From positions 3,162,001 through 3,226,000 of the forward strand of contig CM119385.1 in NCBI GenBank assembly GCA_051294905.1: a DNA stretch of 64,000 nucleotides, in the 5' to 3' direction. Position numbers and translations under genes: made by a program. This stretch comes from Botryllus schlosseri. Lineage: Eukaryota. Under the pieces are notes generated by a model that did no database searches, had not been told where the DNA came from, and saw only the letters and a list, made by a program, of their open reading frames with translations. This document shows positions 13,212-62,698 of the stretch, in pieces (positions within the stretch are counted from its first letter, which is position 1; the number at the start of each line of letters is the position of its first letter).

Positions 13212-13217
13212 TTTATT
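13212..13217 (-). promoter_or_regulatory. Candidate polyadenylation signal of the DNMT3 gene
   Basis: AATAAA on the minus strand about 60 nt after the DNMT3 stop codon; position only, no transcript evidence. Confidence 0.4.
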
Positions 13218-13276: not shown

Positions 13277-15121
13277 TTAATTCCACCACAGAATCACTCC
13301 GTCCATTGATTCCGGTTGAATGCTCGCGAAGTATTCTTTCAGTGGCGCCAGAATAATCCTCACGACCGGAACAGACCACGATCTGCCGAGCAGAGCCAAA
13401 CGTTCGCGAGGCCCTAGATTGTTGACGTCGGTGTAATGTTCTGGTACCCCAAATATTTTTTCTACCTCAGTCGTCCACAAGATATCTTCCTTTCCATGAT
13501 GAACCACTGGGGCTTGCCTCGCCTGCCCTTGGTACAGACATGTAAATTTTGTTGTGATCGTATTCAACTTTTCGACTGTGGCTTTACGGCCTGGCTCTAA
13601 ACAGTTTTGTACCTTGAGACGATCGTTGGCGCCAGGTGCGATTTTACGGTTTCGCAGTCCAGGGATATTTCCCCAGAACAATCGCGGTCTAGCGGCAGCG
13701 CTAACGTATCGTGCATCTGCCATTCGGGGTTCGCATTGTAAAAATCGAGATATTCTCTGCTTCTCGATTCCTTTCATAGAAACCACGTTTTCGAACAGCC
13801 AAAAGAACGGACGCTCTCTGTACTTTCCATTGGCACCGCGTGGTGGCTCTATGGTCTTTAGTACCCGATAAAAGTCGAAGAACAAACACCCACTGCCCTC
13901 CGCGTCTATAAGCCCCTTTCTTCTAGGATTGGCCCCCGATAGGTCGTTGCAAGGACTGCCGCCCAACAGCAAATCAAATGGTCCCAGTTTGTAGATATAT
14001 TCATCGGAAAGTTTAGTTATGTCTCCAATGTGAACTACCTCTGGGTGCCTATTTTGCACCAAACGGATTGCATCTTCGTCGATCTCGGAGGCGAAGAACG
14101 ATCCAATCCCGAGGCCGAGCTGCTTGAGTGCCACCATTCCTGTGGCTATGCCGTCAAATAGAGATAAAACTCGGAGAGGTTTCCTGGAGCTGATTGGAGT
14201 TGGTTTCGGCACGTAAAATCCGGGATATTGCGAATCGTCAATGTTTTGAAACAAGGTCTGAATTTCCTCTTGCCATTCCTCACGTCTTTTAAGCAGAGAA
14301 TTATGTGTAGGCTGACAAAAGAAGCATATCCACCGCTTAGACGACACCGCCACTTGGAAATAATTCTTCTCGGTGGCACTATCAACACACATTTGGCAAT
14401 AGCACCTTCCGCAATCTGGGACATCGCAAAGCAACACCTTTCTTCCTTTACAACATACTGAGCAACAGGAATGGCATCCGTCGGAATTATATTTGAAGAA
14501 GTTCTCGTAGAACAATATTTTGTGCTCCGCACACAGCCCGCCCATGAACAGGGGATGCTTAGCAACGATATTGGTGTCCCCACAAGATAAACAGATACTT
14601 TGTAAATCAATCTGGCCCTCTTTCACTTTGGCGAAGGCTAATGCTTTAGAACCCTTCACCGAGTTTCCATTTTTAGGTCTGATGCACTTTATCGACGAGG
14701 CCGAGCTGCTGATTTCAACATCACCTGAACATAAACTGACAAATTCTTGCTGTCTGCCAACATACTCTTCGAGTGGGAACGGATCACTTGAGAGGCTGCT
14801 CTCGCCGAGAGATAAAACGGAATTGGACAGTTCGCTATTCCGAGTCCTGGGGAGATTGTTCTCAGCGAAGCTTGCTGGCCAGCGGAAATTGTCGTTGACT
14901 GCGTGGCGGTTACTCCACACTCGTTTCAACCTCTGCAAATATCGCGGGTTGAATACCGCAAGCCTAAATTCGTCTTCCAGATTAACGATATCGCAAATCA
15001 TAGACAGAATCGCTTCGAAGCTACTCTCGTTCGGCCGTCTTCCGCGTAGGATCTTATCAATAGCTTCTATAAGGCTATCCTCAAGATCGTATGGAATGTT
15101 GTCTTTCGCTATTGAGCCCAT
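13277..15121 (-). CDS. DNMT3: DNMT3-family DNA (cytosine-5) methyltransferase, single exon, ADD + catalytic domain, no PWWP (614 aa from first ATG)
   Basis: Uninterrupted ORF. ADD finger CLSC...HPLFMGGLCAEH...CSVCC...C...CGRCYCQMC...WICFFC (14315-14593). MTase motifs: I VLSLFDGIATG, II ASEID, IV GGSPCNDLS, VI LFENV, VIII RPRLFWGN, IX WTTEVEKIFG.PEHYTD, X LLGRSWSVPVV...APLKEYF. The ORF-track start at 15154 is a TTG; the first ATG is at 15121, with an in-frame TAA upstream. Confidence 0.97.
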   Translation of the reverse strand: MGSIAKDNIPYDLEDSLIEAIDKILRGRRPNESSFEAILSMICDIVNLEDEFRLAVFNPRYLQRLKRVWSNRHAVNDNFRWPASFAENNLPRTRNSELSNSVLSLGESSLSSDPFPLEEYVGRQQEFVSLCSGDVEISSSASSIKCIRPKNGNSVKGSKALAFAKVKEGQIDLQSICLSCGDTNIVAKHPLFMGGLCAEHKILFYENFFKYNSDGCHSCCSVCCKGRKVLLCDVPDCGRCYCQMCVDSATEKNYFQVAVSSKRWICFFCQPTHNSLLKRREEWQEEIQTLFQNIDDSQYPGFYVPKPTPISSRKPLRVLSLFDGIATGMVALKQLGLGIGSFFASEIDEDAIRLVQNRHPEVVHIGDITKLSDEYIYKLGPFDLLLGGSPCNDLSGANPRRKGLIDAEGSGCLFFDFYRVLKTIEPPRGANGKYRERPFFWLFENVVSMKGIEKQRISRFLQCEPRMADARYVSAAARPRLFWGNIPGLRNRKIAPGANDRLKVQNCLEPGRKATVEKLNTITTKFTCLYQGQARQAPVVHHGKEDILWTTEVEKIFGVPEHYTDVNNLGPRERLALLGRSWSVPVVRIILAPLKEYFASIQPESMDGVILWWN

Positions 15122-17153
15122 CTTTTCTACGAAGTTCCCTCGAGTAGGCGTCAATTAATTACTGCTGTAAGACGCTACTAACAAAAGCGGACGGTATTAA
15201 CCATGCGTCTAACATTGAGAACTGTCACATCCAAACTGATTTGGAGAGTCGTCTCAAATGACCTATAATCCCTATCGCAGTTGTTTAGTGTAAGTGATTA
15301 GCATCAGGGTGGGTTAATCCCGATGAAATACATGAGAAGAAGGGCATATTGCACTGCAATCAACCACACGTTAAATATACGATTATTTTGAAAGTGCGGC
15401 GGCCAACATGCCGTGTTAAAAACTAAGTTTCCTGAACACCTTGTAAAGTTGGAACCACATCCCGTGGAACATGGCGAAACTACAGGTTAAATCAATATTA
15501 ATATTCCACGCAACAATAGTACTCATTTCCGGAGTTATTAATGCTGTGTTTATGTAGATTATATTGACTGCACTTTCAATACGACAGAAATCCACAATAT
15601 GATTTCGATATTGTCAACATAACATTTAAGGAATCGACAGTAATTACGAAGTGAGTATGTGTTCAACTCATTCACTGACAACCGCAGGGAAAATCCTGCC
15701 AAATTACTGAATGCCATTTTAATCCTAATTCAAATCAAAGCACTTCTTTGCATACCACATATCATTCGCCCACTGTTATACCAACGTATGGTGGAGAAGT
15801 TAGAACGGCAAAATCGAAATTCACAATTCATCGGGGTTTCGTTCTAGTACATTGTGTCGGAAAATATTGATACTAGGATTCAATGCATATATCCTAAATC
15901 TGATCATAAGTAAGAATGGATAACACTGTACAAATATGCATATTATTAGTAGCCTATATTCAAGTTCTGCACCTCCAAGAAGCTCTGCAAATATTATTTG
16001 ATCTGATTTGATTATAAGTATATGTTTAATTGTTCATACTTAAAGGACAAGCGGGTTTAGGACATGCGACATCTTGATGTACACAACAGCATGTTATCGT
16101 CTATCTGCAGTATTACTTCCCAATGATGCAAGGAAAAAGGAAATGGTGTGTAGACGACCCGGAGCATGAATGCGGGAAAAAGCCATATCTCCAATGTAAT
16201 TATTAATCCTCGAAACAGAGAGAATAAGCATCTGTTTATTGCTGTCATCCATAGTACCGTTATCTCGCATTGAATTGTACAAGGCACGCATAGTAAGTTA
16301 TAGGTGACAATTCACAAGTAATATTGTTATATCGCTGAATCTCTAGGAATGCGAGTACGTGATCGAAAAATGATCCTTCATATTTCTACTCGGGTGACGC
16401 GTTCACGCTACATATGAAAATATGGCATTCGATGTCATTCCGGTAATTCAGAATTTCTCATATTTCTCATTTTTAATACCTATAAAATGATCTCAGGACA
16501 TACAGGATTGCTTGACTAAGCGTTATGATGCGCGGTCACGGTCATAGCATCGAGTAGCTAAAATGTGCAGAGGTGGAATAACTGCGATTTGAAGGCACGT
16601 TGGAGGTAAACAGAATATATCCTCGAAGGTAATGCAATAGAGATCGAGGCCTTCCATACATATGCATAATTGAAATGACTACAAATCGATGCGAATTGTT
16701 TGGTGAATATAATTCCGGTTTTGAGCTGGATGTCGCTCAATTGTTTGAGCGACCAAAGGCGCCCATTTAACTAGCGTTCACAAGCGCAATATCCGTCGGA
16801 TAATGTTACGAGATTATAATCGATATCGACAAACATGTTAGGAAAGCATTGCCTCAATCCTACGGAAGTTACTTTAGAAAGTAAATTTATATTGGCCGTT
16901 TGTCGTTGCGAGGTTACATGCACAGCGCATACCACTCCAGCGACAATGGAACGTGGATTCGATGAGAGACAGTAATTCCTTTTGGGACGCGCACTTTAGG
17001 GAAAACCTCGACATATCATTTGCCTCCTTAACACAGGGCAACAACAAGATGAAACTCCCGACCCCTGCAAGGTTTACGATCTCGCGACTGTGCTTGCTGG
17101 CTCATGTCTGCCAATGTATAGGCTTACGAGCAGTCACACAACTCACTCCTTGG

Positions 17154-24058: not shown

Positions 24059-27000
24059 CAGTGGCGTAGCAGCCACTTGGCGGTTCTGGCTCTGCGCCAG
24101 GGGCGGCAGGCTCCAAGGGGTCGGCAAAATGAGGCTGCGCAGTGTACACAGCCGGCTAAAATCAGCGTAATTGGTAGTCTAATAGCTGGCGGGAGCTAAA
24201 ATCTAATCAAACTGGTCTCGATCGAAAGCTAGTGTCGCGCTGATTCCGAAAACACGAATTAATATATTAACATGGCAATGGAACCATACTCCGAAATAGC
24301 CGTCAAGGCCAATTGACCATGATAATGAAAATTATATCGTGCGATTATTCGGAGCAATGCAGATTTTCAGATCAGCATTTAAACTGTATTTACAGAATCA
24401 GGGCAACAATAGCTTTCGATTAAGATGAGTATTGGTAAATTTGAGCGCTCGGAGGGCCTGGCCAACTATAGGATGCGTATTCAAGTGTGACAATAAGTTG
24501 GGCTTGTATCCGTAGGTTAGTGATTTATACTCTGGGTTACGATTTGATACAGCAGACCGAGATAACTGTGAAGGTAAGCCAGTCTTAGGAACTGCTTAAG
24601 TTGGTAATAATTGTCAGATTCACATATTGTGCTTAAATTTATACAAGTGTTAATTAAGACTAGAAAATGAAACGTGTCAAAGAGAGTGGAGCTTTTTTTT
24701 AGAAAGAAGAAGAAAGCAAGACAAGCAGAAATAAAAAAGCACGAGTGAGCTATGCTGAAATTTGTAACCTCTTCTGGCTCAAACGTCTCTTTAACATTAC
24801 CAGAGAACGATTCAAATGAAAATCAGGACAATAACGCTGAGCTCCAGAAAGATACTGAAAAGATCAGCTTATCTGCAGAAACGCGAGAGACAGAGTCTAC
24901 CAAGAGTAATAGGCCTACCAATGATATCAATTATACACATGTAGACCAAGGTGAAAACAACGAAGAAGCAGTTTCAGTAGTCAATAATCTGCCCAATGAT
25001 GTGGCCTGTTGGCCTGAAGTTATAGATCACCATTTGAGAGTTGAGCTAGTCAAAGCAGGGCCAGAAAAGTATCAAAACAAGGATGGGCCATTTGCTTCTT
25101 GCAGCAGAATAATTAAAGTTGGCGACAGCACTAAGGTTGAGCGAAGAAGTGTTTCTAAAGAATGGTTCTATAATATACTCAGAAACGGTGACAGAATTTT
25201 GGGAAGTTGGTTATTATATTCGAAAAAGCAATCTGGATTGTATTGTTATTGCTGTTAAGTTGTTCCACCTTACTGGCCCTGCCATATGTAGCGCAAAATG
25301 TTTCTATCATTTTTGGCATTTAAATCCATGCATATTTGAGCATGAGAATTCCGAAATTCACAAAGAATGCATGGAAAAATGGAAAGAGCTTGCAATGAGA
25401 CTACAATCGCAACAAACAATTGGCAAGAACATGTAGAAACATATGGATGGAGAGCGAAAGAAGAGGAGAGCAATTTTAGAAAGCGTTGTTGATGTCATAT
25501 TATTTTTAAGTAAACAAAACCTTCCTTTTCGAGGACATCGTGAAGATTTTGAATCCAACAACCAAGGGAATTTTTTAGAGACCGTGAAGCTTCTGGCAAA
25601 ATATAGTCCCGTACTCAGCAAACATCTTTCTGATATTTGTATTTCTAAGAAGATGACAACTACTTATATTTCTTCCACTACTCAAAATGAGCTTATTGTG
25701 CTTCTCAGTAAAAAAGTCAAAAGCATCGTTCTTGAAGAGGTGCGCGAAGCTAAATATTTCGCGATTATGTGCGACAGTACTCCGGACATATCACATACTG
25801 ATCAAATGACTCTTATAATGAGGTAGGCTATGTAACAATAAAAAACAGCGTTGCCCAACTGAAGGAATCGTTTTTGAATTTCTTTCCGTTGAACGGAAAA
25901 ACGGCAGCTGAAATTTCCCAATCTATTCTAGATGAACTTGAACTAAACAACTTAGATGTGATAATGTGTAGGGGACAAGGCTGCGACAACGCATCTACTA
26001 TGTCGGGAATTCATGCTGGAGTGTAGCAAAAATCAAAAACATAAATCCAAAAGCACTATTCGTGCCGTGTGGAAATCACACACTGAATCTTGCAGGCGTT
26101 CATGCAGTCGGATCACCGCAATTAACCGACAGATTTTTTGCTGTTTTAGAAAGATTGTATGTATTTTTTGCTGCTTCTACGCATAGATGGGATGTCCTTC
26201 TAAAGCATGCGCCAATCGCGCTGAAGCGAGTGATTGACACGCGATGGAGCGCACATCACGCCGCTGTAAAGGCCCTTCACGCAAGTTTTGATGAAATTTT
26301 GGATGCTCTTGAGGAACTAGGTAATCCAAACGAAATCTTACTACACGAGGTGACGCTCATAGGATTCTGGAAGCGATTAAGAATTTCTCTTTCTATTCCT
26401 TCTTATGTTTTTGGAAAGTAATCCTGCGAGAATCTCATGACACACAAACTTACTTGCAGCAAAAAGGACTGTTGTTGGAGCAATGCTCTAACAAGATGAA
26501 GCGTTTGTTAACTTTTTAGTGGAAGAACTAGCTCACGTGGTTGAAGGTTCTGTGGCGATCACAAAATGCAGAGAGCTCGAGATTCCAGTTGAAGATCGGA
26601 GAGTTCGCAGAAAAAGGAGAATTCCCGGCGAACAATCAGTAAATGCTGGACTCAGTGTTGTTGAAGAAGATAGACGGTGCATGTTTGAAGCTTTGGACAG
26701 ATTTAAACTTGAAGCTGAAACTAGGTTTACCGGCATACACCACTTGAATGATATGCTTAGATATTTGAATCCCCACGCGCTGCTGCAAATCGAAAGTAAC
26801 ACTTTATTCAGCAGCGCTTTTAAAAGCACTTATGACGACGAGGTGGACTTTTTGGAGTTGGCTGCGGAAATCGACAGATTTAAGAGGCTGGTGCGGAGCA
26901 GTGAAACCACGTTTGATCGTATAGTGCAACAGCGTTTGATGTTTTACGGTGGTTAGATAATGCAAAGCTACTTGATTCGACCCCATATTTATGCTTGTGT

Positions 27001-30879: not shown

Positions 30880-31620
30880 AACGCGAAACAATAACTTCAT
30901 ATTGTTAATTTATTCGCTAAAAGCTTTTCGACTAACTCTCATCAGTAGCGAACGTTAGTGATGGGGTGAATCAAATTCGAAATGTAAGAACTATTTTGTC
31001 TGTATGACGTAATAATAACAAAAACAAACAACTAGTAGACGGGCTAGATACGGTAGTAACGGTACAAAACAAACGTTACGAGTACATATTCGGTTATAAA
31101 TAACCGAAAACACAACACATAACATTAATGAAATATTCCAAGAGTGTAGAGGCGTTCCTTCTGGCGACAGAGAATCGGCTTTCGTAGCTTTATGATCGTA
31201 GATTCCAGGACCTTTAAATGAAAAAGAGAACGGCCACGAGCAAGTATAGAAAATTGACTGTCGTTGTAATGATCAGCACAATCTGGATGGGATAAGAGAT
31301 GCTGTCCAATAGCCGAATTACAAGCAGTAACTTGATCATAATCACGCAGTGTGTCAACAGACTGCGATGAAGGAGTTGGAGAAACATTATTTATTCTAAT
31401 TTGCCGTGGGACATGCTGGCGAATTCTTTGCTGCAAGCGCTGAGACGTGCGACCTACATACCGACTGTCACATCGGCACGTGTATTCATATATTATATTG
31501 CTTTGATTTGTCGCAGGTAGCACATCCTTTTGTGTTGCAGGCATCAGAGATTTCGTCGTGAAGATTATCTGAGGTTCTACTTGTGAAAAACAATGGCTCA
31601 CTGACGATTTAATTTGTTTT
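30880..31620 (-). mobile_element. 5'-truncated Penelope-like retroelement (GIY-YIG endonuclease end plus 3' region)
   Basis: ORF 31125-31601: KDVLP...SNIIYEYTCRCDSRYVGRTSQRLQQRIRQH...SAIGQHL...FSILAR...LKVLESTII...PILCRQKE, the PLE GIY-YIG with its CCHH residues; a hammerhead motif lies downstream. Confidence 0.9.
30913..30952 (-). ncRNA. Minimal type I hammerhead ribozyme motif
   Basis: Minus strand TTCGCTA-CTGATGA-GAGTTAGTC-GAAA-AGCTTT-TAGCGAA: 7-bp helix I, intact CUGAUGA/GAAA core, 2-bp helix II, palindromic AAGCTT helix III; located in the PLE 3' region, where such ribozymes are known to occur. Confidence 0.8.
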
Positions 31621-32980: not shown

Positions 32981-33052
32981 GCAAAAATCACTATGAAGTA
33001 GTGTAACCACTAGATAGCTAGTAACGATTTTGAATTGTGTGCAGGTAATCCA

Positions 33053-34310
33053 ATGGAAAAGTGCCGAAAGAGAAGTTCTCGGACAAGACTGATATGCAAA
33101 AGCTGTCGTCGATCCATATCTTCGTCTTCCAAAGAAGATCACATAACGGCTGCTCATGGGGGCGATTGTTCAATTGAGTTTAGTGTGGAAGATCATCTTA
33201 GACAAAGCAAGCTAACTTTCAAACCCATTGCTCGGCCCATTGAAGTTGAACAGTCTCAGCAGTCAGTACTGGTGCCAATCGACAGTGCACATGTAAACTC
33301 CTGCTCTCCTGAACTTGATATCCCTACTGTGGCAGTGTCTTGTCCTTCAGTGCCAGAAATACCTGTGATAGCGCCCAGTGATGATGCTTGCTCAAATGAA
33401 AAAGATTCGAAAACCTGTGTTGATGCTGCTGGTCTACTCAAGGCTGTCTGCAATTTCCAATTCCTTTTGGGACTTAAAATTTTGAATTGGATTTTCAAAT
33501 TTACTAACAGCCTTTCCACCCATCTTCAAGGGACAGAAATTGATATAGGAATTTCACAACAACTGGCAACCGCAACCATTTCATGCTTGCGTAATGCAAG
33601 GACTAAAACGGCATTTCATGGAATCTGGGAAGACGCTTGTAAATCTGTTGAACATCTGAAACGCCAGGATGTTGACATCGAGGTGACTCTACACCAGAGA
33701 CAGCAGTGGCCATCTAAAAGGTTCCAAGCACTGGTTGGTGAGGATGGTGAGAGGGACGCAACTCGGGGGGTTTTCTGATGAGGAAAGGATGTGCTATGAA
33801 GTGTACTTCGACGCGATTGATAGAATCTCTGCTGAGCTATCTGAACGGTTTGCCAACAACACGTCGAAAGTTCTTCTGTCGCTAGCAGAAATGGTACAAG
33901 GGAAAGGAACTATGGATGACTATAAAAAAATATCAGCCTTTTATTCCATAGATCAGGAATTGTTGGAATCTGAGTGTATTCTGTTCCAAAACTTAAATCC
34001 GCAAGGTATGATCAAAAGTGCTGGAGAATGTACGGAACTTCTTGTGTCTACTGGCATTGGAAAAACCCTTCACCATTTCTCGAGGGCCGCACAGATTTTT
34101 GCCACTATTCCTGCGACATCTTGCACTGCTGAAAGGTCTTTTTCAGGGTTGAGAAGGCTCAAGACCTATCTGAGATCCACTATGGGGCAGCCACGTCTTA
34201 CTAACATGGCGGTATTATACCTTGAAAGAGACATGACAAATAATATTGATATTGAGGATATCATAGATGTGTTTGGTATTCGCCATGGCAGAAACAAATA
34301 CTTTTTTTGA
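33053..34310 (+). pseudogene. Internally deleted hAT (Tip100/Zaphod-like) transposase, one frameshift near 33770
   Basis: N-terminal CKSC...HITAAH zinc finger-like segment joined directly to DAAGLLKAVCNFQFLL..., then IPATSCTAERSFSGLRRLKTYLRSTMGQPRL; the central catalytic region is absent. Confidence 0.88.
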
Positions 34311-58863: not shown

Positions 58864-59468
58864 TAGGGGTCCTCAAAAATGACTTTTTTTCTCGAATCGT
58901 ACTGGCTACTTGATAAAATTGTTAGGTTACCTAATTTAAGCCTACACACCAAAGTCGGTTCAATTCCAACCAGTAGCCGCATCGCTACAGGAGAAGAAAG
59001 TTTATATTTATTATATAAAAATAATAACAAAAAATATGAAAATTTTCTGTTCACCCCATGAAAGTGTTAGGTTATTGCCGTCGAAAAAATTGGATTCTGA
59101 ATAAAATAGTATTTACGGTGACCAATTCTTTATTTATTTATTATAGTGGTGCCCACCGTAAATACTATTTTATTCAAATCCAAATTTTTCGACGGCAATA
59201 ACTTCGCTTCCACTGGTTGGAATTAGACCAAATTTGGTGAACACCGTTTCTATAGACAACCTAACACTTCCATGGGAGGAACAGAAAATTTTCAAATTAT
59301 TTGTTATTTATTTTTATATAATAAATAGAAGCTTTCTTCACCTGTAGCGATGCGGCTACTGACTGGAATTGAACCAAATTTTGCGTGTAGGCTTAAATTA
59401 GGTAACCTAACAATTCTATCAAGTAGCTAGTACGATTTGAGGAAAAAAGTCATTTTTGAAGACCCCTA
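58864..59468. mobile_element. 605-bp palindromic (foldback) MITE with about 250-bp inverted arms
   Basis: Ends TAGGGGTCCTCAAAAATGAC / GTCATTTTTGAAGACCCCTA; perfect TSD GTGGACAC (58856-58863, 59469-59476); the arms pair almost to the centre, apart from an insertion of about 50 bp in the right arm. Confidence 0.93.
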
Positions 59469-62400
59469 GTGGACACGCAAATCGACTGTCAGGTGCTGTG
59501 ATCGGAACGTACAATGCGTGCAATGCGGTACGCAGATGGTCGCTTATTGACCTATCATTAGCATCAGCGGATATCGCAAACAAATGCTCGACGCACGTAA
59601 CTACCGATATTCTGGATAGTGATCACCTTATAGTGCTCACCACGTATATGTGCAGAACCCGGAGAGCGAAAATAAAGCCACCCAGCTGGTCACTCGGTAA
59701 AGCAGATTGGGAAACATTCAGAAATAATGTAGGTACCAATAGTCATTTAGAATCGAATGCTAGTATTGATGCCGTTGTAAATGAATTCACGGAAAGCATT
59801 CTCCATGCTGCTAGTATATCAATTCCTATGACTCGCAACCATCGGAAATCTCCGAATCCTTGGTGGAATGAAGAGTGCTCTAGGGCTGTAAGAAAGAAGA
59901 AAGCAGCATTTATGAGAATGAAAAGAACCTTTAATCAGCATGACATTCTTCAATTCAAAAGGGAACGTGCTCGATGTAAGAGGGTAATATTGACGTCAAA
60001 GCGAGATTCTTGGAGGGCTTTCTGTGGAACCCTTGAAGCACGCGCTAATCTACAAAAGGTATGGAAAGTAGTTCATTCAATTTCCAATAAACATAATCAC
60101 CGTGGGGTACCTTCATTGAAAGTAAGTGGTAATTTAACTACAGCCGACCATGAAATCGCTAATGAGATTGCTTCAACGTTCAAAAATGTAAGCAGTGATT
60201 CGAATTTCCCGTCGAATTTTATTGCAACAAGACAAAGTCTTCTTTTGACTGATGGTTACAGTGGCCCCGGTAATGATCAACTTAATATCGCCTTTTCATT
60301 GACGGAACTGGCCATGGCTTTAAGAACCAAGAAAAATACGTCACCTGGGGGCGACCAATTATGCTATGCTATGTTCAAAAATCTTCCGCACCAAGGTTTA
60401 CTGAGATTGCTTGAGATAATGAATTACTCTTGGTCAACGGGTAATATTCCGAAACATTGGAGTCATGCGGTGATAATCCCTATCTTGAAGCCGGGTAAAG
60501 ATCCTACCTCTGCCAACTCTTATCGTCCTATTTCCCTGACCAGCCATATGTGCAAAGTAATGGAAACTATGGTGGCGAATAGACTTTCATGGTACTTGGA
60601 AAAGAATGGATTACTACATACATCACAGTCCGGGTTTAGGAGAGGGAGACGAGCCCTCGATCACGTTCTTCGATTGCATGACACAGTTTATCGAGCAATT
60701 AACAATGGACGGGTTGTATTAGCGGTTTTCCTTGACATTAAGCGGGCTTATGACATGGTATGGCGTGATGGATTAATTTTGAAACTGAAACGACTCGGAA
60801 TTTGTGGGGAAATGTTAAATTGGATAAAATGCTTTTTATCAAACCGAACATTTCAAGTAAGGATTGGATGCACTCTCTCAGGAATCCATGAATTGGAAAA
60901 TGGTATCCCACAAGGAAGTGTACTATCACCTTTATTTTTTGCAATTATGATTAATGACCTTCCTCAAGTTATATGTTCCCAGCTTGGACTATATGCTGAC
61001 GACTGTGCAATCTGGCAATCTGGGCTCAATATTATTGAGCCGATGCAAAGTATTCAATCTAGCCTAACTGCGATCTCCAACTGGTGTGCTAAATGGGGTT
61101 TTGTTATATCGAAGGAGAAGACGGTCGCCATGCTCTTTACAAGAAGGCGTAAAGTCACGATCCCTGAATTACGCATTGATAATCATATTATCAATTTTGT
61201 GGACAATTTCAAGTATCTGGGAATTATTTTTGACAAGAAACTGAACTACAAGGGGCACATCGACTACATAGCGATGAAATGTGCGGGCCGCATAAATTTA
61301 CTCAGAATGCTTTCAGGTACCACATGGGGAGCATCCAATAATCTTCTAGTTGTGCTCTACAGAACTCTCATCAGGTCAGTAATCGAATACGGTATGGAAG
61401 CATACTTCTTCGCTCCGAAGACATATCTAAAGAAAGTCGAGACTATTCGCAATCAAGCTCTTCGTATATGTTGCGGAGCGATGGTCAGTACACCAATTTC
61501 TGTAATTGAAATTGAATGCAATGATATGCCTCTATCCCTACGGCACTTGTATCTGTGTTTAAAATATAGATATTGTCTCAGCACCCAACAAACTCACCCA
61601 ACTAATTCGATATTGGAAGAATCATGGGAAGATATATACAGCTTAATAAATGAGAGATTTTCAACCTTTCGATCCTTAACCAGTGGTGCTGACATTCGCG
61701 ATTTGCACGCATCTGGGCAAGTCATATTAAAAACCCCTCCGTGGATTGCTCAGGAACCTGATGTAGACTCATCATTGACAAAATCATTAGGCAGAAATTC
61801 CCCTGCAGAAATTGTTAAGGTGGTATTCCGGGACCATATTTTCTCGAACTACAGTGATCATACACTTGTATATACGGATGGTTCGAAGACATCGTCAGGA
61901 TGTGGTTATGCCGTATACATTCCTCGGTTGAATGTGAAATTGTCTGCGACGCTTCCTAAATGTTTTTCAATATTTTATGTAGAGTTGCATGCCATCAAAG
62001 ATGCATTATCGTGGGTTGAAAGAAACACGCATAGTAAAATTGCTGTAGTAAGTGACAGTTTGAGTGCCCTAACCGCCATCGCCAATCATGGATCGGTCAA
62101 TGATTACGTTGTGAACGATATATTAGAATATATTGCAGAACTTCAAAATAACAATAAATCAATCACGTTCATCTGGATACCTGGGCATGCTGGTATTCGT
62201 GGTAACGAAATCGCCGATCAATTAGCGAAAGACGCTGCGTCAAGAAGGGATGAAGGGAACAATCACTTATTACCTCTGCGTGATGCACTGTCCGTCTTAA
62301 GACACCATTGTAGATGTGAATGGGATCAGATATACCGAAGCACTGAAACCGGAAGAGCGTATAAGAATCTGAGACCATCAATTACCGACGATATAGCTCA

Positions 62401-62698
62401 AATTGGAACACGGCAAAGAGACGTAATTCTACTGAGATTAAGGAGCGGCCATTGCAGACTGAATCAACATCTGCACAAGATCCGTTGTTCTGAGACTCCA
62501 CTATGTCAGCAATGCAATGCAGAGGAATCTGTAGAGCACTTTTTGTTACATTGTGTGAGATATCAACATCAAAGGAGACAACTACATCATGCTGCACGAA
62601 TGAGCCGAATAAATTGGGAGTTGAAAGATGTTTTAACAGATCCAACGATATTGGATAATGTTGTACAGTTCGTGATATCTTCGGGAAGACTTATCTAG
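59456..62698 (+). CDS. LINE ORF2 (partial APE endonuclease, reverse transcriptase, RNase H); 5'-truncated, and the ORF-track start overlaps the MITE and is not a real start
   Basis: SLIDLSLAS...DSDH (APE end); SPGGD, SYRPISLTS, QSGFR, FLDIKRAYD, GIPQGSVLSP, LYADD, KYLG (RT); YTDGS, ELHAI, SDSLS, WIPGHAGIRGNEIAD (RNase H); CQQC...ESVEHFLLHC. No stop or frameshift over 1080 codons. Confidence 0.93.
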   Translation: MKTPSGHANRLSGAVIGTYNACNAVRRWSLIDLSLASADIANKCSTHVTTDILDSDHLIVLTTYMCRTRRAKIKPPSWSLGKADWETFRNNVGTNSHLESNASIDAVVNEFTESILHAASISIPMTRNHRKSPNPWWNEECSRAVRKKKAAFMRMKRTFNQHDILQFKRERARCKRVILTSKRDSWRAFCGTLEARANLQKVWKVVHSISNKHNHRGVPSLKVSGNLTTADHEIANEIASTFKNVSSDSNFPSNFIATRQSLLLTDGYSGPGNDQLNIAFSLTELAMALRTKKNTSPGGDQLCYAMFKNLPHQGLLRLLEIMNYSWSTGNIPKHWSHAVIIPILKPGKDPTSANSYRPISLTSHMCKVMETMVANRLSWYLEKNGLLHTSQSGFRRGRRALDHVLRLHDTVYRAINNGRVVLAVFLDIKRAYDMVWRDGLILKLKRLGICGEMLNWIKCFLSNRTFQVRIGCTLSGIHELENGIPQGSVLSPLFFAIMINDLPQVICSQLGLYADDCAIWQSGLNIIEPMQSIQSSLTAISNWCAKWGFVISKEKTVAMLFTRRRKVTIPELRIDNHIINFVDNFKYLGIIFDKKLNYKGHIDYIAMKCAGRINLLRMLSGTTWGASNNLLVVLYRTLIRSVIEYGMEAYFFAPKTYLKKVETIRNQALRICCGAMVSTPISVIEIECNDMPLSLRHLYLCLKYRYCLSTQQTHPTNSILEESWEDIYSLINERFSTFRSLTSGADIRDLHASGQVILKTPPWIAQEPDVDSSLTKSLGRNSPAEIVKVVFRDHIFSNYSDHTLVYTDGSKTSSGCGYAVYIPRLNVKLSATLPKCFSIFYVELHAIKDALSWVERNTHSKIAVVSDSLSALTAIANHGSVNDYVVNDILEYIAELQNNNKSITFIWIPGHAGIRGNEIADQLAKDAASRRDEGNNHLLPLRDALSVLRHHCRCEWDQIYRSTETGRAYKNLRPSITDDIAQIGTRQRDVILLRLRSGHCRLNQHLHKIRCSETPLCQQCNAEESVEHFLLHCVRYQHQRRQLHHAARMSRINWELKDVLTDPTILDNVVQFVISSGRLI

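Follow-up and report, generated by a model that had tools for sequence, protein, structure and literature searches.

A predicted DNMT3-type DNA methyltransferase gene of Botryllus schlosseri carries the target-recognition loop of PWWP-less tunicate DNMT3s

We analysed 64,000 nucleotides of Botryllus schlosseri DNA (assembly GCA_051294905.1, contig CM119385.1, positions 3,162,001 to 3,226,000 of the forward strand), referred to here as the window, and focused on a DNMT3-type methyltransferase gene on its minus strand. From its sequence and a structural model, the gene is predicted, with a probability that we put at roughly 75%, to encode an active de novo DNA cytosine-5 methyltransferase that is an ortholog of the PWWP-less DNMT3 of tunicates. 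Its target-recognition domain (TRD) loop departs from that of the vertebrate enzymes. The features of the gene, in window coordinates, are as follows.

13277–15121, minus strand: complete coding sequence of a DNMT3-type de novo DNA methyltransferase in a single exon, 614 residues plus stop (open reading frame (ORF) list and translation).
14315–14635, minus strand: ADD domain (GATA-like zinc finger and PHD finger), ORF residues 174–280 (Pfam PF17980, 5.1e-13; PF21255, 9.7e-11).
13319–14200, minus strand: C5-cytosine methyltransferase (MTase) domain, ORF residues 319–612 (Pfam PF00145, 7.5e-18).
13913–13963, minus strand: motif IV and catalytic loop GGSPCNDLSGANPRRKG, ORF residues 398–414 (alignments A1 and A3).
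13526–13564, minus strand: TRD loop NTITTKFTCLYQG, ORF residues 531–543, corresponding to DNMT3A 831–843.
13382–13438, minus strand: RD-interface segment HYTDVNNLGPRERLALLGR, ORF residues 573–591.
13280–13318, minus strand: C-terminal extension of 13 residues ending in WWN, past the end of vertebrate DNMT3s (alignment A1).
13212–13217, minus strand: AATAAA polyadenylation-signal-like hexamer, about 60 nucleotides past the stop (read from the sequence).

The minus strand between 13277 and 15154 is one unbroken ORF of 625 codons. Its mechanical start is a TTG at 15154, with an in-frame TAA immediately upstream; as the first ATG comes at 15121, the coding sequence was taken as 15121 to 13277. In alignment, the N terminus of the window protein lines up with the Met start of its nearest homolog, P0001. 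The ADD domain matches the solved DNMT3A ADD structures 3a1a and 4qbr at about 1e-28, and its zinc-binding Cys columns show no variation in alignment A1. The window protein has no PWWP match (PF00855) at E≤0.01, and the alignment has a gap at the position of the vertebrate PWWP. Since PWWP is not universal among DNMT3s, its absence is compatible with DNMT3 membership. At the other end of the protein, the C-terminal tail of 13–14 residues (WWN or WWR) is found only in the window protein, P0001, P0002 and P0003, other DNMT3s ending at about EYFACV.

The best match of the window protein among solved structures (phmmer against the PDB) is human DNMT3A 4u7p, with an E value of 3.3e-136 and coverage of both the ADD and MTase domains, so that chance similarity is no explanation for the homology. 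The equivalents of F640, E664, D686, C710, E756, R790, R792, T834 and P718 are all kept. Motifs I, IV (PCN), VI (ENV) and VIII are intact along with the S-adenosylmethionine-contact residues, and the C5-MTase motifs (the PCN Cys, the ENV Glu, R790/R792 and F640/E664/D686) are shared with nine tunicate sequences. All five interface residues, two in the FF interface (F732, F772) and three in the RD interface (H873, D876, R885), are identical to those of DNMT3A. In the catalytic loop the Cys is kept, while I715-V716 of DNMT3A become Gly-Ala and A719 becomes Arg; R882 is replaced by Pro. An AlphaFold2 model of residues 319–612, built from an input alignment of 45 sequences, has a mean pLDDT (predicted local distance difference test score) of 91.9 and a pTM (predicted template modelling score) of 0.90, with values of 89–92 for the blocks that hold the TRD loop. 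In Foldseek superpositions on the catalytic domains of DNMT3B and DNMT3A bound to DNA, the model reaches template modelling (TM) scores of 0.94–0.97 and root mean square deviations (r.m.s.d.) of 1.0–1.3 Å. Every one of the best 50 matches is a DNMT3A, DNMT3B or DNMT3C chain (TM 0.86–0.97).

The minus-strand translation, which runs through EKLNTITTKFTCLYQGQARQ, contains the TRD loop much as an earlier note on this DNA had read it. The interval given there, 13532–13564, spans the first 11 loop codons (NTITTKFTCLY); Q and G, encoded at 13526–13531, complete the 13 residues. In the alignment to DNMT3A 4u7p, K-F-T-C-L-Y lies opposite R836-S837-N838-S839-I840-K841. This bears out three particulars of the note: Lys occupies the R836/K777 position (DNMT3A/DNMT3B numbering), F-T-C takes the place of S-N-S, and the TITT and KEDILW..E motifs around the loop are intact. 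The Asn that hydrogen-bonds the CpG guanine in DNMT3B, and in one of the DNMT3A complexes, is Thr in the window protein, and the backbone-contacting Lys841 is Tyr. Relative to the majority metazoan form, T-I/V-T-T followed by x-N-S-L/I-K/R-Q-G, the TITT, Q and G are kept and N-S-I-K has become T-C-L-Y. Six of the 13 loop residues are identical to human, about the same divergence as for the whole domain (54–55%).

The top database matches of the window protein are all tunicate DNMT3s, vertebrate DNMT3A and DNMT3B reaching at most 49% identity. The nearest tunicate proteins compare with it as follows.

P0001 (Logan assembly protein): 76% identity; loop KFTCLYQG, identical to the window.
P0002 (Styela clava, 'DNMT3C-like'): 71% identity; loop KYTCLYQG, one residue off.
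P0003 (partial): 73% identity; loop KYTCLYQG.
P0004 (Ciona intestinalis, 'DNMT3A-like'): 62% identity; loop RSHCLYQG.
P0005 (Phallusia): 62% identity; loop KPSCLYAG.
P0006 (Clavelina): 60% identity; loop KSTCLYQG.

The full-length proteins among these (P0001, P0002 and P0004–P0006) have no PWWP; P0003 is a C-terminal fragment whose N terminus cannot be judged. A quick maximum-likelihood tree (IQ-TREE), with Shimodaira–Hasegawa-like approximate likelihood ratio test (SH-aLRT) supports and no bootstrap, clusters the window protein with P0001 and Styela clava at 98. The PWWP-less tunicate clade as a whole has a support of 100 and sits on a long stem branch (0.73). Its place inside the Styela-containing tunicate clade identifies the window gene as the stolidobranch-ascidian ortholog of a PWWP-less DNMT3 paralog that occurs in ascidians of three orders. 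All three orders share the C-L-Y-Q/A-G ending of the loop, and the six PWWP-less tunicate DNMT3s that were aligned have Cys839, Leu840, Tyr841 and Gly843 without exception. The positions that the note had stressed most are those that vary within the clade, where residue 837 is Phe, Tyr, Ser or Pro and residue 838 is Thr, His or Ser.

Tunicates also have a PWWP-bearing DNMT3 paralog (Styela P0274/P0197, Ciona P0275 and C. savignyi P0143), which forms a separate clade. Its loop reads QSGTVSNK or KLQSVRGG, with neither Asn838 nor S-N-S. The position of the two paralogs relative to each other is a polytomy with long branches on the quick tree. Two genes are in keeping with the literature: Ciona is reported to have DNMT3I and DNMT3II (PMC3827831), and C. 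savignyi two DNMT3 homologs (PMC6976628). The idea of a loop rewired in this one gene, which the note had put forward, does not survive these comparisons. The nearest orthologs have the same loop or one that differs at a single residue, so that it is the norm of the lineage, and a parental DNMT3 that keeps S-N-S was found in none of the sampled tunicates. The FTCLY loop is, on this comparison, an old and lineage-wide tunicate state and not a gene-specific rewiring.

Also placed within the PWWP-less tunicate clade are three proteins from marine metagenome contigs (P0145, P0151 and P0202; SH-aLRT 99 for the pair). These proteins are without an ADD domain, their loop reads KKSSI followed by H or S, and they possibly come from pelagic tunicates.

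Codon comparison indicates that the loop is being kept. Synonymous divergence (dS) is saturated against both relatives compared, and we therefore used non-synonymous divergence (dN) and a count of loop codons in place of pairwise dN/dS. Against the nearest relative, L001, dS is saturated gene-wide, in contrast to a dN of 0.099 for the MTase domain; among the 13 codons of the loop there are four synonymous differences and no non-synonymous ones. A low dN beside a saturated dS, with no amino-acid change in the loop, points to strong purifying selection on the MTase domain and TRD loop, the loop being maintained and not decaying.

We then placed the loop among animals at large, using an exhaustive HMMER search and two word-indexed searches, alignment of the catalytic domains and thinning of the non-tunicates to 101 representatives less than 75% identical to one another. 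Of these 101 DNMT3-type domains, 65 have Asn838, 81 have Ser839 and 61 combine the two as N-S, a pair that is thus typical of DNMT3s without defining them. Ser837 is present in 30, so that to call S-N-S usually conserved, as the note had done, is an overstatement. Cys839 occurs in five of the 101 and Tyr841 in two. The N-S pair is found in a sponge, cnidarians, molluscs, Priapulus, horseshoe crab, echinoderms and vertebrates. Its presence from sponge to vertebrates suggests that N-S is likely to be the ancestral state of the DNMT3 loop. It is missing from amphioxus (TLHSVRQG), Hymenoptera (Fopius, Cardiocondyla and Copidosoma), decapods (Cherax, Penaeus and Homarus), krill and an aphid.

Among the chordates sampled, N-S is seen only in vertebrates. 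In the amphioxus protein (P0138, Branchiostoma belcheri), Asn838 is replaced by His, which the PWWP-less paralog of Ciona has there too. Extra amphibian 'DNMT3A-like' paralogs of about 600 residues, P0137 from Bufo bufo and P0153 from Ranitomeya imitator, form a clade of their own (SH-aLRT 99), and their loops, SPWSLRQG and NRYSMRQG, have Trp or Tyr at that position.

Clade signatures, defined as residues fixed in the six tunicate orthologs including the window and present in no more than 5% of the 101 others, occupy 10 of 289 columns: Y660F, V672L, V675N, I715G, I780A, S839C, K841Y, M852H, M864V and S878N. We considered whether these changes are concentrated in the TRD loop and rejected the idea, as two of the ten lie there (Fisher P=0.12), with no strong enrichment. 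Four of the ten lie in the three DNA-contact loops combined (P=0.046), a marginal value that indicates a weak concentration at most. Within the catalytic loop, Gly715 occurs in five and Ala716 in 28 of the 101, and across DNMT3s Ala716 shows no coupling to the absence of Asn838 (odds ratio 0.61, P=0.44). The Pro at the R882 position was likewise rejected as a noteworthy change, position 882 being variable across Metazoa (Arg in 16 and Pro in 11 of the 101).

The loop bears on which sequences the enzyme would methylate. By analogy with its family, the ADD domain would read unmodified H3K4 and gate the enzyme, which would dimerise through the RD interface, flip the target cytosine and methylate CpG. 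Most of the CpG reading would come from the Thr834 equivalent and the catalytic loop, and Lys836 would sense the +1 base, as it does in DNMT3B. The substituted loop residues stand at DNA-contact positions: K782 of DNMT3B, the K841 equivalent, touches the DNA backbone (PMC7335073), and N838 of DNMT3A touches the guanine in the CGA complex and not in the CGT complex (PMC9530848). With Thr and Tyr at such positions, it is reasonable to expect a different flanking preference, and an altered preference at +1 to +3 is plausible for the window enzyme. The FTCLY loop would probably shift flanking-sequence preference and weaken two Lys–phosphate contacts (K841Y and K844Q), and it would probably leave CpG specificity in place.

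The note had offered a relaxed CpG preference as the other outcome, and this half of its proposal fares less well than the flanking shift. The argument would be that loss of Asn838 (N779 in DNMT3B) together with Lys836 relaxes recognition of the CpG guanine and leads to appreciable non-CG methylation. The window protein does combine a DNMT3B-like Lys836 with a missing Asn. The whole PWWP-less tunicate clade moreover has Gly, rare elsewhere, at position 715, a lead absent from the note; this position tunes CpG/CpH specificity 1.1–2.6-fold between DNMT3A (Ile) and DNMT3B (Asn) (PMC7335073). Mutating the Asn itself has small effects. DNMT3B N779A causes a 'modest decrease' in CpG specificity with lower CGA activity (PMC7335073), and DNMT3A N838A is as active as the wild type, is more specific for CpG and methylates CGA and CGG poorly (PMC9530848). 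Only R836A strongly relaxes specificity, and the window protein keeps a basic residue there. In Ciona muscle, methylation stands at 23.1% for CG, 0.2% for CHG and 0.4% for CHH, in agreement with an earlier data set (PMC3827831), even though both Ciona DNMT3 loops are without the Asn. Asn-less loops recur in 36 of the 101 other DNMT3-type representatives, amphioxus, Hymenoptera and decapods included, and the window protein keeps Pro718 beside its Thr834 equivalent. By analogy with these systems, loss of CpG specificity in the window enzyme is unlikely.

Several considerations weigh against our interpretation of the gene. The CpG specificity of tunicate DNMT3s is inferred from related systems, the literature searched having yielded neither enzymology of a tunicate DNMT3 nor a stolidobranch methylome. 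The Ciona ortholog is an imperfect proxy, as its Arg836 and His838 correspond to Lys and Thr in the window protein. In muscle and sperm, the steady-state methylome reflects mostly maintenance methylation and could mask transient CH methylation. Gly715 is as rare as the counts above indicate, at a position that affects CpG/CpH choice. Finally, the 64-kb window is all of the genome that was covered, and a second DNMT3 copy elsewhere is possible. A bolder proposal, which we regard as unlikely, is that other contacts (Lys836, the variable residues 837 and 838, Cys839-Leu840-Tyr841 and Gly715-Ala716) serve PWWP-less tunicate DNMT3s in reading the CpG guanine and its 3′ flank. These enzymes would then have a flank preference unlike that of DNMT3A and DNMT3B, possibly CH activity hidden by maintenance-dominated methylomes, and a division of labour with the PWWP-bearing paralog.

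We also considered the CpG content of the window as evidence on specificity and rejected it. The observed/expected ratio is 1.07 over the window (0.95–1.28 per 4 kb, with 0.74 only in the first 4 kb) and 1.07 in the DNMT3 gene, which shows no depletion and is uninformative. Most of the window, the DNMT3 gene included, appears to have been unmethylated in the germ line over its history, as would be expected of a mosaic invertebrate methylome.

The single exon raises the question of how the gene lost its introns. The Clavelina ortholog extends over 8.8 kb, with at least 12 coding segments and at least 11 introns, one of them directly 5′ of DGCQ. A contig from a Styela-like species (L003) has a splice-acceptor-like sequence, ...tttctag, at the DGCQ site shared with the Clavelina intron, and no further intron over the last ~400 codons past it; the window coding sequence is continuous throughout. 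This contig has a 3′ flank of 1.4 kb with no poly(A), which makes its genomic origin probable and not proven. In the window, the sequence after the AATAAA at 13212–13217 has no A-tract that could be a poly(A) remnant, and only short, imperfect repeats of 14–19 nucleotides flank the gene, none of them convincing as a target-site duplication. With L003 partly intron-free, no poly(A) and no convincing repeats, the intron-free state is best read as stepwise intron loss in a resident gene, which fits better than a recent retrocopy.

A retroposed and neofunctionalised extra copy, comparable to DNMT3C and with an intron-bearing parent of canonical loop elsewhere in the genome, would explain why the whole coding sequence is one exon where the Clavelina ortholog has many, and the window also contains an intact ORF for a reverse transcriptase. 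We consider such an origin quite improbable. Styela, Ciona, Phallusia and Clavelina each have a single PWWP-less DNMT3, and the window gene falls with these as their ortholog; the S-N-S expected of a canonical parent is in neither tunicate paralog. Retroposition would also have to accommodate the flanks just described and the one shared intron of L003, a pattern of stepwise loss, though from a contig whose genomic origin is only probable.

It is highly improbable that the gene encodes a catalytically inactive regulatory subunit of the DNMT3L or DNMT3B3 kind. The missing PWWP recalls DNMT3L, and one predicted Styela clava isoform of the PWWP-bearing paralog is without motifs IV–VI, but the motifs and S-adenosylmethionine-contact residues of the window protein are intact and its MTase dN is 0.099 against a saturated dS. 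The Styela clava isoform (P0197, predicted isoform X3) is missing, relative to P0274, about 100 residues over motifs IV–VI, including the catalytic PCN. It is reminiscent of inactive DNMT3B3-type isoforms, and may be a prediction artefact.

The rest of the window holds sequences resembling mobile elements and unassigned ORFs, all on the plus strand except where stated. An intact ORF of 1080 residues at 59456–62698 has reverse transcriptase (PF00078, 1e-37) and RNase H (PF00075, 1.3e-17) domains and resembles a retrotransposon pol gene. Two overlapping ORFs at 33035–34310, the second with a hAT-family C-terminal dimerisation domain (PF05699, 1.6e-09), are probably a broken hAT transposase. On the minus strand, an ORF of 158 residues at 31125–31601 matches GIY-YIG weakly (E=7.5e-4; 20.2 bits, short of the Pfam cut-off of 22.6), and may be a Penelope-like element endonuclease or a chance match. 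Five ORFs of 105–168 residues lie in a row on the same strand at 24752–26956; the two that were scanned have no Pfam match, and the run may represent either a lineage-specific gene or an element in decay. Scans of the whole 64,000 nucleotides for tRNAs and against Rfam were empty, and there are no runs of N.

The window gene is in itself ordinary, one more ortholog of a tunicate DNMT3. What it brings out is the absence of the Asn-Ser pair, regarded in structural work as a reader of CpG and flank, from the two DNMT3 paralogs of the tunicates sampled, from amphioxus and from several arthropod groups. In the PWWP-less tunicate DNMT3s, Cys-Leu-Tyr is fixed instead, and Gly occupies the CpG/CpH-tuning position 715. 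The tunicate enzymes are thus natural variants for gauging the share of each contact in CpG and flanking-sequence choice, and they could reveal how a PWWP-less DNMT3 directs methylation to gene bodies.

The closest of the known systems are the ascidian PWWP-less DNMT3s (P0002 and P0004–P0006). They have the same arrangement of ADD and MTase domains without PWWP, fall in one clade with the window protein at 60–76% identity over these domains, and share its C-L-Y-Q/A-G loop ending, its S-G-A-N-P-R catalytic loop and the Pro at the R882 position. They differ at the 837/838 pair, which is F-T in the window, Y-T in Styela, S-H in Ciona, P-S in Phallusia and S-T in Clavelina, and the window coding sequence is intron-free in contrast to the introns of Clavelina. 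The PWWP-bearing tunicate paralog (P0274, P0275 and P0143) likewise has no Asn838 and has intact catalytic residues, but keeps PWWP and a vertebrate-like S-I-V-N-P-A catalytic loop. Human DNMT3B (6U8P, 6KDA) resembles the window protein in the Lys at 836/777, the fold (TM 0.95–0.97, r.m.s.d. 1.0–1.3 Å), the catalytic residues and the RD and FF interfaces; it differs in having N779-S780 and K782 (T-C and Y in the window), Asn656 (Gly in the window) and a PWWP. Human DNMT3A (5YX2, 4U7P) shares TITT, EDILW and GRSWSVPV, whereas the window protein differs from it by R836K, S837F, N838T, S839C, I840L, K841Y, I715G, V716A and R882P and by the missing PWWP. Mouse DNMT3C (8TCI) is, like the window protein, a DNMT3 paralog of ADD and MTase domains without PWWP, and '3C-like' is the automatic NCBI name of the Styela ortholog. 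DNMT3C is, however, a rodent tandem duplicate of DNMT3B, and hence not orthologous to the window gene.

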